64,000 nt of DNA from Octopus bimaculoides. Lineage: Eukaryota. The position numbers and the translations under genes were made by a program. The notes under the pieces are model-generated. The model made no database searches, was not told the origin of the DNA, and was given only the letters and a program-made list of their open reading frames with translations. Location of the stretch: positions 28,042,409 to 28,106,408 of the forward strand of contig NC_068998.1 in NCBI RefSeq assembly GCF_001194135.2. The letters are read 5' to 3'. Below, piece after piece: positions 1,021-29,634 of the stretch. The first letter of the stretch is position 1. Each line of letters begins with the position of its first letter.

Positions 1021-1395
1021 GTACTACTCTATATCTTTGAGATGATAAATTATGTACATTATTTACAATGGTATGTTGCTGATGCCATTTTTCTGTTGAT
1101 ATTATTCAAGTCCCTGCCTGGGACTGAACTTAGCATCTGAAGGTTAGTAGCTTATGCTCTTATCCACTACACTAGTGGGCAATTATAGAGTGAATTTTAG
1201 AGCTTACAAACCTAGTACTTTATCTTTTAATACTGGTTCCCATATTACATTCATATCTCCACTAAGTCTGCTTAGCAGGTTATTGTATCCTATCATATGT
1301 GCACCTGATGAAGGCTGGAGAGCACATCAGCTGAAATGTGACAACAATGAACAAGATGAGAACACCTATCCATCCATTGTAAATAATAATGGTAT
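1021..1395. mobile_element. Old, decayed copy of the hammerhead-bearing inverted-dimer element
   Basis: reverse tail (gagatgataaattatgtacattatttaca, 1040-1068), reverse tRNA-like head (about 1100-1180) and forward degenerate hammerhead CTGATGA-aggctg...cagct-GAAA (1305-1336), matching 28789-29314. Confidence 0.7.
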
Positions 1396-19419: not shown

Positions 19420-19807
19420 TATGATGAAGGGAACGTTAGAAACTCTATTTATCAATGTAAAATTACTTCCGGTTCTGATGTCTTTTTTTAATATGAGTAA
19501 TTCTTCATCTTAGTTGTCCAAAAGAATTTCTAATCATTACTCTACATTTAAACATATCAATAAATGTAACAATACTGGGTTTAGTAAATTAATTTGGTAT
19601 CTAAAGGATCATAATAAACAATATGATTTGGAATGGTATATTCTATCTAAATCATTTCCGTATGACAAAGGTAAATCTTTCTGTCCGCTTTGTAACGATG
19701 AAATGTATTTCATCTTGTTCTCAGAGAATCCTCTTGTAAACACATTTAAAGAACACGTTTATTGTTGCAAACATTGGCAAAAACATACCTTTAGTTCCTA
19801 TAAGTGA
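19420..19807 (+). mobile_element. Penelope-like element GIY-YIG endonuclease C-terminal fragment (frameshifted)
   Basis: NSIYQCKITS...SKRISNHYSTFKH...NTGFSKLIWYLKD...WYILSKSFPYDKGKSFCPLCNDE...NT..E.VYCCKH* matches PLE endonuclease C-termini. Confidence 0.75.
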
Positions 19808-24821: not shown

Positions 24822-25075
24822 CTAGATGTAGAGATAAAAAGAGAACATTGTATATTATTTAACACAAACTAACAATGTTAGTTAACATGGGAAAATGCTG
24901 CAGAAACAGACATTTATATCATTCCATATTTCAACAAATTAGAAGAATGTGTAGGTTCAGATTGAGCTTGTAATTCAATTACCTAACTAAAACAATGTAC
25001 AGTTCAATATTTAAGAGATGAATTATGTACATTATTTACATTTGACGGACATTTGTCCTCATCTTGTTTGTTGTT

Positions 25076-25121
25076 AACACAACGTTTCGGTTGAAATACC
25101 CTCCAGCCTTCATCAGGTGTC
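25076..25121 (-). ncRNA. Minimal type-I hammerhead ribozyme, catalytic core intact
   Basis: GACAC CUGAUGA A GGCUG gaggguauuu CAACC GAAAC GUU/GUGUU; helix I GACAC:GUGUU; palindromic AACGUU helix III; one mismatch in helix II. Confidence 0.8.
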
Positions 25122-25172
25122 TTGTGGAAATTTCAAACCTGGGTTCTCATTCCTAAGGTATTTCTCGATGTA

Positions 25173-25203
<31 letters not shown>

Positions 25204-25291
25204 TAAAAACCTGGAATCGAACCCCAAAATTCCGAGTTCGATTCCAAGCAGTGACCTGAGTAGTAGTAGTAATAATAATAATAATAATAAT

Positions 25292-25660
25292 AAGACTTGC
25301 TAATAGAAATTGAAAAAATGTGGCACCTCAAGGCAACTACCGTACCAGTGATAGTAGGATCTCTAGGAATGATAAAAAAAGGTACTGAAACCTATTTGAA
25401 AATGATACCAGGCTTACCATCCCTACAGGAAGTGCAAAAAATCATGTTAACTGGAACGACTCATGTACTGAGAAGAGCATTATCGCTGTGAAAACAACAA
25501 CCATTCATGATTTTTTTTTTTTTAAATACATATTTTACCTGTGAATTTGCGTGTGTAAACTGGGAATGCATACAACAAGTTTCTCTGCCCTAGGTGTACG
25601 AAAAACACTCGGCGAGAAATGGAAGAAAATTTGAAGAAAGAAGAAAAACAAAACACAATA
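25292..25660 (+). mobile_element. 5'-truncated R4/Dong-clade non-LTR element (RLE C-terminus plus 3'UTR)
   Basis: KDLLIEIEKMWHLKATTVPVIVGSLGMIKKG...LQEVQKIMLTGTTHVLRRALSL*; flanked on both sides by (TAA)n. Confidence 0.8.
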
Positions 25661-25737
25661 ATAATAATAATAACAACAACAACAACAACATTGAGAAATA
25701 CGTTAGAAATAAGAACCCAGGTTCGAAATTTCCCCAA

Positions 25738-25783
25738 GACACCTGAAGAAAGCTGGAGGGTATATCAGCCGAAATGTTGTGTT
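25738..25783 (+). ncRNA. Minimal type-I hammerhead ribozyme motif (CUGAAGA variant; GAAAU)
   Basis: GACAC CUGAAGA AAGCUG gaggguauau CAGCC GAAAU GUU GUGUU. Confidence 0.7.
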
Positions 25784-26599
25784 AACAACAAATGAGATGA
25801 CGACAAATAACCATCAAATGTAAATAATGTAAAACAATGCAATGTTTTAATGTTTGCATATGCCACTTCAACTTATATGTCGGAAAATAGGGTAGTAATC
25901 CTTCTAAGATTTATGACTTGTAGACATAACAACTAAAGAGGAAAGAATACATGAAGAAATAATCAGTTGCACCAGCAGTGGCTCAAGGAACTCAAATACA
26001 GCCAATTCTCAAAGCAGATCTTTGTAATTACAAGAGTTCTTTTAAATACTGATCATGGAACAGGACTTTACTTAGGTTTTCACTTGGTACATGCAGACAA
26101 AAAGTGTGAAATATCTCACTTTAGAGTGTAACAAAATAGTTATGGAAGGATTTCAACCAACCAACTAAATGTCAGGAATTCAAAATCTACAACTGCATTG
26201 CTTAATAAATGGCATAGCTAATATCTATACACAAATATATTGAGATGAAGTCACTGGAAAATTTGTTAGAATCATTTTAACTCTAATTTAAAGGTTAGGC
26301 TTTACATAAACTGATCAAAACTGGAAAATATATCCCTGCATTTGAAAACACAAATGAAAAAAATGCAATCAACATAGAGGGAATTAGCACAATACAGTTG
26401 CCTTTATTGAAATAAATATTGACACTTCAACCATAAGGCATTATATCCTGAAAATTCTCAAAAGAACTATAAAATATTGCAATTTAAATAACTTAAATTC
26501 AATTCTGTTGTCTATAATTTGAAAACAAAAGAACAAAAAAACAACCTTTTCTTATGTTCCTTAGGTGCCACATTTTACAACAAAGAGGTCCGATGCCCT

Positions 26600-28394: not shown

Positions 28395-28830
28395 CTGAAG
28401 AAGATAAAAAAAAAAAGCATTTTATATATGAGGTCTCATTAAAATTACAGCTAGGATTAGAAAATATTTTTTCCCTAAAAACTTATAGGGCAATCCAACT
28501 CTAGAGATGACTCTCATTTCAGTTTGAAAAGACATGTTTAAAGTGCACCAGGGTTGCTTATATAATTCCTGAAAATGATATCATAGTGGATTTAAGGATA
28601 AAAAAAAAATACTGACATAATATACATCTTACAAATTACATTGAATTGCACAATGTAATTTCTGATTCAAAAATCCATAGTAGCTTGAAGACCAGCAAAG
28701 GTTTTGAATTTGGAATCAAACATAAATTAAAAGAATAAATTCTTTTTTTAAATCTAGGACTCAAAATTTATCAAAAACCAACCACAATATTTACATTCGA
28801 TGGGTATTTGTCGTCATCTTGTTTGTTGTT

Positions 28831-28876
28831 AACACAACGTTTTGGCTGATATACCCTCCAGCCTTCATCAGGTGTC
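28831..28876 (-). ncRNA. Minimal hammerhead motif with G12-to-A change (probably inactive)
   Basis: GACAC CUGAUGA A GGCUG gaggguauau CAGCC AAAAC GUU GUGUU. Confidence 0.7.
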
Positions 28877-28923
28877 TTGGGGAAATTTCGAACCTGGGTT
28901 CTCATTCCTAAGGTATTTTTCGA

Positions 28924-28960
<37 letters not shown>

Positions 28961-29192
28961 GTTATTGTTATTGTTCAGGTCACCGCTTGGAATCGAACTT
29001 GGAATCTTGGGGTTGGTAGCCCACGCTCTTAACCACAACACCATATGCCCGTGGGTGTAGTGGTTAAGAGCGCGGGCTACTCACCCCAAAATTCCGAGTT
29101 CGATTCCAAGCAGTGACCTGAACAATAACAATAATAATAATAACATCAAAAAATACCTTAGGAATGAGAACCCAGGTTCGAAATTTCCCCAA

Positions 29193-29238
29193 GACACCTG
29201 AAGAAGACAGGAGGGTATATCAGCTGAAACGTTGTATT
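29193..29238 (+). ncRNA. Minimal hammerhead motif with a weakened helix II
   Basis: GACAC CUGAAGA AGACAG gaggguauau CAGCU GAAAC GUU GUAUU. Confidence 0.65.
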
Positions 29239-29634
29239 AACAAACAAGATGAGGACAAATATCTGTCGAATGTAAATAATGTACATAATTCCTCATCTCT
29301 TAAATATAGAATTGAACCAACCACAATGCCTATATTAAATGGAATTCAATGCAAAGTAACCATTTAATAAGATAAATTTCATTGCTAATACAATAAAAAC
29401 ATTTGCATATTGGGAAATCTAGAATAAAACAGATTTTTAAGTAAACTGTAAAACTTTGGTATATTTCTTCAGTAGTTCTTTAATAGCAATAACCACACTT
29501 ACATGTGTAACATTTACAAAAATGTACAAGTATTGTATATTTTACTGTAGCTAAAGGAATCTTAAGTCACCTCCTACTAGAGGGAGTCTTTTTTGCCTCT
29601 CATTATTTTGCAAGTTATTTGACAACATTCACCC

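Follow-up and report, generated by a model that had tools for sequence, protein, structure and literature searches.

At positions 28789-29314 of a 64,000-nucleotide stretch of the Octopus bimaculoides genome (hereafter the window), two copies of a short interspersed element (SINE) are joined head to head into a 526-bp palindrome. Each copy couples a tRNA-derived head to a 3' part made of a hammerhead ribozyme module of about 130 nt, with about 50 or 83 nt lying 3' of the ribozyme. On the basis of their sequence, we consider it probable that these copies belong to a family of tRNA-derived SINEs equipped with the recognition module of Penelope-like elements (PLEs), which would rely on RNA polymerase III (Pol III) for transcription and be mobilized by a PLE through target-primed reverse transcription (TPRT) on both DNA strands. 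The idea of a PLE-mobilized SINE was put forward by a first-pass annotation made from the letters of the window, and our analysis supports it, since each of its structural predictions that could be tested is borne out. The inverted dimer itself is a by-product of integration and not the transposing unit, because junctions differ between loci and one locus joins two different elements. As for the palindrome in the window, it is an old, dead intronic insertion of this octopus SINE family, since both of its ribozyme motifs are mutated and its arms are 8-11% divergent.

Opposed SINE copies and their two 3' ends

The layout of the palindrome largely confirms what the first-pass annotation had described. 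A repeat search finds its arms complementary over 136 nt at 90% and over 118 nt at 82%, the whole is flanked by a 13-bp direct repeat with 13 of 13 positions identical, the two heads meet at a small hairpin, each arm harbors an (AAT)n tract, and only the right arm carries an extra tail. With the microsatellite left aside, identity between the arms reaches 92% for the body and 89% for the head. From 5' to 3', an arm consists of a head of about 70 nt with A- and B-box-like blocks, an (AAT)n microsatellite with some AAC, a body spanning some 50 nt, then a hammerhead-like motif (~46 nt) and a 3' region; the microsatellites of the two arms are unequal, the left one being longer. Judged against a copy from Octopus sinensis described below, the left arm has a complete 5' end ((C)GGGCATATGG...), and it stops in 3' at the proximal of two sites (...GTAAATAT). 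The right arm is missing some 7 nt in 5' and stops at the distal site (...AGAATTG), 36-37 nt past the point at which the left arm ends. Between 28890 and 29179, Rfam also gives a sub-threshold match to the plant MIR2606 family (66 bits, against a gathering score of 139.7), which arises because the palindrome, if transcribed through, would form a long AT-rich hairpin.

BLAST and a profile hidden Markov model of the arms revealed two more loci in the window, both of which are head-to-head composites (table 1). If the palindrome is counted as locus 1, locus 2 comprises a minus-strand arm with a long tail (25000-25222) and a plus-strand arm with a short tail that is split in two (25223-25293 and 25656-25829), both heads being cut near the B box and the pair being enclosed in a 10-bp target-site duplication (TSD), TAAAACAATG, at 24988-24997 and 25830-25839. 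What splits the plus arm is an unrelated fragment of about 360 bp within its microsatellite (25294-25655), which may have come in by a secondary insertion or by template switching; it encodes ...VPVIVGSLGMIKKGTETYLKMIPGLPSLQEVQKIMLTGTTHVLRRALS*, presumably similar to the C-terminus of an invertebrate retrotransposon open reading frame (ORF). Locus 3 is a composite of a diverged relative. Its minus arm (1026-1172) corresponds to a short SINE that has a tRNA head and a long tail but lacks a hammerhead, and its plus arm (1173-1387) is devoid of a tRNA head, ends in a short tail and retains the hammerhead core boxes with a 6-bp helix II (1305-1336), helix I and U17 having been lost. No TSD was identified at locus 3. 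As its arms are different elements, two templates can be argued for.

Translated frames of the element, searched against proteins, led to two annotated octopus proteins that contain the SINE. An O. sinensis isoform (P0121, XP_029651560.2) starts with MRTQVRNFPKTPEEGWRVYQPKRC..., which corresponds to the SINE body and hammerhead in frame, this alternative isoform owing its start codon and its ~35 initial residues to the SINE. In O. bimaculoides, the C-terminus of a NUP42 gene model (P0122, A0A0L8FR24) is made of the antisense SINE body, microsatellite, and head. Both cases may reflect either exonization or an annotation artifact. Through the sister isoform of the former protein, we reached 47 kb of O. 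sinensis DNA (L001), together with the orthologous 36 kb of Octopus vulgaris (L002). Two family insertions lie in L001 and both are common to L002: L001-A, a full-length copy with an intact hammerhead and a long tail that is head to head with a fragment made of a truncated head plus microsatellite, and a 5'-truncated monomer with a short tail.

Overall, 5'-truncated copies and monomers are present in the family and yet do not dominate it, four of the five insertions found in 111 kb (window and L001) being head-to-head composites. Their junctions vary: one arm is full length and the other short of 7 nt in the palindrome, both arms are cut near the B box in locus 2, and a head fragment primed in the microsatellite is found in L001-A. 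Given these varying junctions and the different elements joined at locus 3, the inverted dimer cannot be retained as the unit of the element, as the first-pass annotation had it. Other searches were less productive, exact-pattern scans for family motifs in metagenome and viral contigs giving 0 matches, and a search for more octopus loci with the reverse transcriptase (RT) of long interspersed elements (LINEs) returning proteins 55-65% identical and no octopus DNA.

The same design exists in another eukaryote. A profile search of 1.84 billion representative proteins yielded 173 short ORFs spanning related copies, which fall into an octopus-like group and a second group with loci from a eukaryote assembly (ENA ERZ21867824). 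In one of the latter (L003, 9716-10382), a full tRNA-headed SINE with a hammerhead and a short tail is head to head with 2.7 tandem hammerhead units of 129 nt that end in a long tail, within a TSD of ~12 bp. In another (L010, 10080-10511), a fragment made of hammerhead and tail is head to head with 2.8 tandem units, within an exact 12-bp TSD. The tRNA-headed SINE of this assembly has its ribozyme and tail in common with the 129-nt tandem units. Tandem copies, such as those that form the pseudo-long terminal repeats (pLTRs) of PLEs, are restricted to the ERZ21867824 relatives, none being found in the window or among the octopus copies. Short Logan contigs contributed several monomers besides one inverted pair (L004). 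Inverted head-to-head copies are thereby documented in the three window loci, in L001-A and its counterpart L002-A, and in L003, L004, and L010.

The arms of these composites end at two discrete places about 35 nt apart, located 47-50 and 81-83 nt beyond the predicted cleavage site of the ribozyme (after position 29233 in the right arm of the palindrome). Short arms stop no more than 2 nt from GTAAATAAT in all cases, and long arms stop at GAAYTG, 81-83 nt past the cleavage site. In the usual composite, the proximal site (...GUAAAUAAU) is where one arm ends, the other extending some 35 nt beyond, so that a tail of ~35-37 nt is present on one arm only. The first-pass annotation had called for tail asymmetry and TSD lengths to be tabulated across copies. 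The one-sided tail recurs beyond the palindrome in loci 2 and 3, L003, and L010, and TSDs are not fixed in length, the clear ones measuring 13, 10, 12, and ~12 bp and the candidate of L001-A (~6 bp) being ambiguous. Short arms end within a small hairpin, AAUAAUGUACAUAAUU, and a 9-bp stem, AGAUGAGGA/UCCUCAUCU, links the region directly 3' of the ribozyme to the tail extension and encloses this hairpin (29239-29314, and the equivalent in L001). This stem and hairpin may together form a candidate RT-binding structure.

Ribozyme motif and tRNA-derived head

The minimal hammerheads of PLEs are characterized by a short helix I, one additional nucleotide after A9, pairing of G10.1 with C11.1, the lack of loop III, and a palindromic ACGU, 15.2/16.2 (PMC4209133). 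The motif of the octopus family fits every PLE minimal-hammerhead feature listed in that study, in line with the earlier claim, and from its design and its conservation across diverged families we accept it as a predicted PLE-type minimal hammerhead. The hammerhead string that had been quoted for the palindrome contains motif elements that are all present, but it is a composite of the two arms, neither of which carries all of it. As a matter of fact, the left arm reads GACAC CTGATGA A GGCTG..CAGCC AAAAC GTT GTGTT, with G12 replaced by A, and the right arm reads GACAC CTGAAGA A GACAG..CAGCT GAAAC GTT GTATT, with two mismatches in helix II and one in helix I, its CUGAAGA box being legal because position 7 is free. 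None of the window's arms passes the full minimal-hammerhead descriptor. An intact version is found in L001 (10035-10070), where the motif is GACAC CUGAAGA A GGCUG GAGGGUGUAU CAGCC GAAAC GU U/GUGUU (the slash marking the predicted cleavage site). The full descriptor matches only this octopus copy and its O. vulgaris orthologue, with 0 matches in 600 shuffles of the window, and the minimum free energy fold that ViennaRNA returns for its monomer consists of exactly helices I and II.

The core boxes CUGANGA and GAAA are both found in the right arm and in the L001 copy, the left arm having CUGAUGA but AAAA. Among 14 distinct copies from two lineages, the unpaired A between A9 and G10.1 is present in 13, and the 10.1/11.1 pair is G-C in seven (including the left arm and the L001 copy) and G-U in three (including the right arm). 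The open helix I (GACAC/GUGUU) and GAAACGUU are present, loop III is absent, and the palindromic ACGU (15.1-16.1), which would imply action as a dimer, has columns that pair in 93% of cells. Taken over all 14 copies, the share of paired cells is 81%, compared with 13-48% in slid registers, and one compensatory exchange, U-A for C-G, separates the two lineages. Because both of their hammerheads are mutated, cleavage by either arm of the palindrome appears unlikely; published PLE minimal hammerheads themselves show weak cleavage or require a protein (PMC4209133, PMC11167929). Besides, the motif does not sit in the pLTR of an element encoding RT and GIY-YIG domains: it is in the SINE, and no PLE ORF adjoins any copy.

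At the other end of the element, the L001 copy has an A box, TGGCGTAGTGG, matching at 11 of 11 positions at +8, and a B box, AGTTCGATTCC, matching at 10 of 11 at +51, both at tRNA-like positions; the heads of the window arms match at 9 of 11 and 10 of 11. From this promoter geometry, the element would be transcribed by Pol III from its head. The tRNA-like Pol III head announced by the first-pass annotation is therefore upheld as far as A- and B-box-like blocks are concerned, but tRNA detection does not follow: ARAGORN at default settings finds no tRNA in the palindrome, and the Rfam tRNA model has no match at E<=10. With the ARAGORN threshold lowered to 80%, a weak cloverleaf is drawn for the left-arm head and none for the right-arm head, two of the three heads tested giving one. 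Two similarities may connect the family with the octopus OR2/CORE-SINE lineage and are offered as leads only: the head at 29052-29080 matches what we take to be the MIR consensus (TATGGCGTAGTGGTTAAGAGCGCGG) with a score of 35, against a shuffle maximum of 25, and the tail at 29286-29302 (TTCCTCATCTCTTAAAT) resembles what is presumably the CORE motif, TTCCTCATCTGTAAAAT (p ~0.013).

Probable integration by a Penelope-like element and rival explanations

In PLEs, an inverted pLTR has been described adjoining the element, with a 31-bp tail on one inverted pLTR and TSDs of 8-10 bp; palindromes are found at head-to-head junctions, pLTRs suffice for mobilization in trans, and (AAT)n or (AAC)n tracts are captured through template jumps (PMC3846280). 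A tail of 30-40 bp at one end and an inverted 5'-truncated copy are also on record (PMC8557442), and in vitro both DNA strands are cleaved and extended, from two adjacent internal RT start sites whose spacing equals the tail (PMC11167929). From the host side, Penelope elements are present and expanded in octopus (PMC8967140). As the single TSD, the variable junctions, the differing arms, and the two 3' ends of our family match published PLEs, a SINE integrated by a PLE is the best account of the data, and dependence of the SINE on a PLE is most likely, with mobilization presumably in trans.

According to this scenario, the RT-endonuclease of a PLE would recognize the module formed by the hammerhead and tail and would copy the RNA by TPRT, nicking both DNA strands some 10-13 bp apart and priming on both. 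The two cDNAs would then grow towards each other until their 3' ends, equivalent to the 5' ends of the RNAs, are joined, and the joining of two opposed cDNAs would thus produce a head-to-head pair inside one TSD. RT could start at either of two internal sites, a proximal one after ...GUAAAUAAU in the small hairpin and a distal one ~35 nt downstream after GAAYUG, which would leave a tail on one arm and usually none on the other. The fusion between head and module could for its part stem from a template jump or from an insertion at a trinucleotide repeat, as suggested by the microsatellite that lies between them. That the two arms of a locus originate simultaneously is deduced from the shared TSD and not from the sequence of the arms. 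Snap-back self-priming on one RNA was also considered as the sole route to the palindrome and rejected, since the pairs at locus 3 and L003 each combine two different elements.

Several observations nonetheless weigh against mobilization by a PLE. In the ~190 kb formed by the window and ten loci, no autonomous PLE sharing the hammerhead or the tail was found, so that the full-length partner sought since the first-pass annotation did not turn up; within the fetched DNA, the tail is not shared with any PLE or LINE either, and the RT ORFs of L001, L003, and L010 are of LINE type. The inverted pair of L004 has two apparently long tails and no detectable TSD, two arms from one locus resemble each other no more than arms across loci do, and the sample of loci is small, L003, L004, and L010 having been ascertained through ORFs that span repeated modules. 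As regards the ribozyme, covariation over the 14 copies amounts to a single event, not above the shuffle control, and the fold energy of the intact copy is no better than that of shuffles (z = -0.79). Finally, Rfam, run on the window at gathering thresholds and at E<=10 and on the intact O. sinensis copy at E<=10, gives no hammerhead and no tRNA. The search with hammerhead models that had been recommended for the window therefore came back empty, even for the intact motif, which says little because the library holds no model for PLE hammerheads devoid of loop III.

One GIY-YIG protein fragment, and possibly a second, do occur in the same DNA. The fragment found in L001 (47068-47346, minus strand; Pfam PF01541, 23.7 bits) is an isolated remnant without a nearby hammerhead, and it was rejected on these grounds as the autonomous partner. 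In the window, an ORF at 19514-19804 (plus strand; RISNHYSTFKH...CPLCNDEMYFIL) may represent the downstream part of a GIY-YIG-like protein. Neither is linked to the SINE, and the two could be what is left of a PLE clade lacking hammerheads, or of some other GIY-YIG element.

SINEs are usually taught as parasites of LINEs, and one may ask whether a LINE (e.g., of the RTE or CR1 families, which abound in octopus) mobilizes this one, with inversions due to twin priming and a hammerhead-like motif that is an inherited relic. Fragments of LINE RT are frequent in the DNA analyzed, where the PLE partner was not found, 5' inversions are a known product of twin priming, and L001-A resembles internal priming on the microsatellite. 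Yet classical twin priming involves one RNA and yields an inverted and a direct segment that do not overlap, whereas both arms span one and the same region here and those of locus 3 are different elements. LINE-dependent SINEs usually end in poly(A) or a short tandem repeat, neither of which is found at the 3' end of the element. Two ends ~35 nt apart, a one-sided tail, and the partial tandems of the related family are on the contrary PLE-specific (PMC8557442, PMC3846280, PMC11167929), and the motif displays all the idiosyncrasies of PLE minimal hammerheads (PMC4209133), which makes a LINE origin of these insertions improbable.

We regard as highly improbable that the palindrome formed after insertion, either by a local inverted duplication of one SINE or by two neighboring independent insertions. 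Replication template switching can yield palindromes, and the arms, at ~89-92% identity, are no closer to one another than unrelated copies are, but this divergence also fits the decay of two copies of equal age. Moreover, a single exact 13-bp TSD surrounds the whole and neither arm has its own, and the architecture recurs at independent loci with other junctions and other TSDs, including in another taxon. An almost complete palindrome and its TSD, along with the sub-threshold MIR2606 hairpin match, might also evoke a foldback or miniature inverted-repeat (MITE-like) DNA transposon, with long terminal inverted repeats in which tRNA- and hammerhead-like strings occur by chance. In this case, however, the two ends do not mirror each other as inverted repeats, one of them having ~36 extra nt, TSD length varies (13, 10, and 12 bp), monomers and 5'-truncated copies exist, and the center differs among loci. 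TSDs of 10-13 bp are furthermore longer than those generally known from cut-and-paste superfamilies, and we hold a DNA transposon to be extremely unlikely. PLE-mediated integration of the SINE is thus the explanation that we retain. A bolder version of it, which we deem rather unlikely, would see in a major octopus SINE lineage the first clearly tRNA-derived SINE that parasitizes PLEs and not LINEs; its head-to-head pairs would then result from two of its RNAs being paired by the helix III palindrome of their minimal hammerheads within a dimeric PLE RT-endonuclease that primes both strands, and its ribozyme would serve mainly in dimerization and recruitment of the RNA rather than in processing.

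Relation to known elements and genomic setting

The mechanism of insertion considered here is known, and it is a tRNA-derived hammerhead SINE as a passenger of PLEs that is, as far as we found, undescribed. The novelty claimed by the first-pass annotation stands in this respect, no tRNA-headed PLE passenger having been found in the literature searched, but was somewhat overstated, since SMalpha elements and retrozymes are already known. The ribozyme retroposons SMalpha and Sjalpha of Schistosoma were reportedly described by Ferbeyre and colleagues in 1998 and by Laha and colleagues in 2000, and the octopus tRNA-derived SINEs OR1, OR2, and OK are said to have been described by Ohshima and Okada in 1994. 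In terms of ribozyme design, the family is the same as PLE pLTRs, in which helix I has 4-5 bp (Cervera & de la Pena 2014; Arkhipova et al. 2013; Craig et al. 2021; Frangieh et al. 2024). The likeness to PLEs extends to the inverted head-to-head copy in one TSD, the 30-40-nt tail at one end, the variable short TSDs, the trinucleotide microsatellites, and the dual hammerheads on opposite strands, 100-700 bp apart, already noted in Schistosoma. Unlike PLEs, the octopus copies have no RT/GIY-YIG ORF and no direct pLTR pair, their 5' part is a tRNA-derived Pol III head and not a PLE promoter, and their TSDs (10-13 bp) are slightly longer than those of Adineta PLEs (8-10 bp).

SMalpha and Sjalpha are also short, non-coding, apparently transcribed by Pol III, and endowed with a type-I hammerhead, and thus set a precedent for a "ribozyme SINE" (PMC6765202). 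By their description, SMalpha elements nevertheless differ in having canonical and not minimal hammerheads (PMC4209133) and in often forming tandem arrays (PMC6765202), whereas the octopus element has the minimal variant of PLEs and is dispersed, in inverted composites with a tail. The non-LTR retrozymes of animals (Cervera & de la Pena 2020; Li, Clavereau & Pollet 2026 preprint) resemble the family in being non-autonomous, in their hammerheads, in their proposed dependence on PLEs, and in their kinship with pLTRs. They are, however, tandem units of ~170-400 nt that give circular RNAs and have no tRNA head, unlike the non-tandem octopus family with its Pol III head; the 129-nt tandem hammerhead units of ERZ21867824 are shorter than these retrozyme units. 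As to OR1, OR2, OK, and the "tRNA-Core" and "tRNA-Deu" classes of octopus SINEs, which we compared by description, they resemble the family in their host genus, their high abundance, and a head derived from tRNA. The literature that we searched makes no mention of a hammerhead or of a PLE link for octopus SINEs, Repbase and Dfam being outside that search, and a full-text search for sequence strings of the family gave no match.

The ribozyme itself is not new, and the palindrome copy is inactive. If true, though, a tRNA-headed SINE with the 3' module and integration scars of PLEs would add a second class of SINE partners, and would offer a small and abundant natural reporter of PLE biology, in which start sites, both-strand priming, and junctions could be read from hundreds of copies. 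SINEs are reported to be the largest class of transposable elements in octopus genomes, and if this family makes up a sizeable part of them, the link with PLEs would change the account of their expansion. The family also reaches genes, as indicated by the alternative first coding exon of an annotated O. sinensis gene and by the NUP42 gene model of O. bimaculoides. Should the PLE-dimer reading be true, genomes would moreover be seeded with intronic perfect hairpins, that is, with potential double-stranded RNA substrates in an animal that edits its RNA heavily.

In the window, the palindrome and locus 2 share a single intron of a cytoplasmic aconitase (ACO1/IRP1-like) gene, the one flanked by the exons at ~31.5 and ~24.8 kb; exons of this gene are spread over the minus strand between 56203 and 24567 (homologues with Pfam PF00330 and PF00694).

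Table 1. Coordinates of the SINE loci, their parts, and neighboring features in the window
Feature	Position	Strand	Basis
TSD, left copy (AACCAACCACAAT)	28776..28788	.	exact 13/13 match to 29315-29327
Left arm, SINE copy	28789..29051	-	nhmmer 308.8 bits and alignments
Left-arm minimal hammerhead motif, inactivated (GAAA box to AAAA, G12A)	28831..28876	-	read from sequence; full descriptor failed
Left-arm microsatellite, (AAT)n/(AAC), separating head from body	28925..28975	-	sequence and alignment
Left-arm tRNA-derived head	28976..29051	-	ARAGORN cloverleaf at 80% threshold only; B box GTTCGATTCC
Head-to-head junction gcccgtggg	29047..29055	.	left-arm 5' end abuts about position 8 of right arm; compared with L001 5' end
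Right arm, SINE copy	29052..29314	+	nhmmer 282 bits and alignments
Right-arm tRNA-derived head	29052..29121	+	A-box-like TGGGTGTAGTGG at 29052-29063 and B-box-like AGTTCGATTCC at 29097-29107; read from sequence
Right-arm minimal hammerhead motif, core intact (CUGAAGA...GAAA), helices II and I damaged	29193..29238	+	full descriptor failed
Tail extension of one arm only, 36-37 nt, from proximal to distal 3' end	29279..29314	+	left arm without it; same in window loci 2 and 3 and L001
TSD, right copy	29315..29327	.	exact match to left copy
Locus 2, head-to-head composite	24988..25839	.	BLAST, nhmmer, alignments
Locus 3, head-to-head composite of diverged relative	1026..1387	.	alignments, nhmmer, ARAGORN
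Aconitase exon-like ORFs	~56203-55958, 47367-47146, 41795-41244, 31736-31518, 24821-24567	-	
CTRLQSDLA repeat	~7.6-8.0 kb (+), 15.1-15.9 kb (+), 17.4-17.9 kb (-), 35.3-35.6 kb (-), 57.2-57.5 kb (+)		

Two further observations concern the window at large. Runs of N (assembly gaps) are located at ~12.9 kb and at 58.87-59.1 kb, in low-complexity or repeat-rich stretches. A repeat with the open frame CTRLQSDLA.FLQLDALPNTNH is present in at least five copies in the window and at several places in L001, and is probably a different high-copy element.

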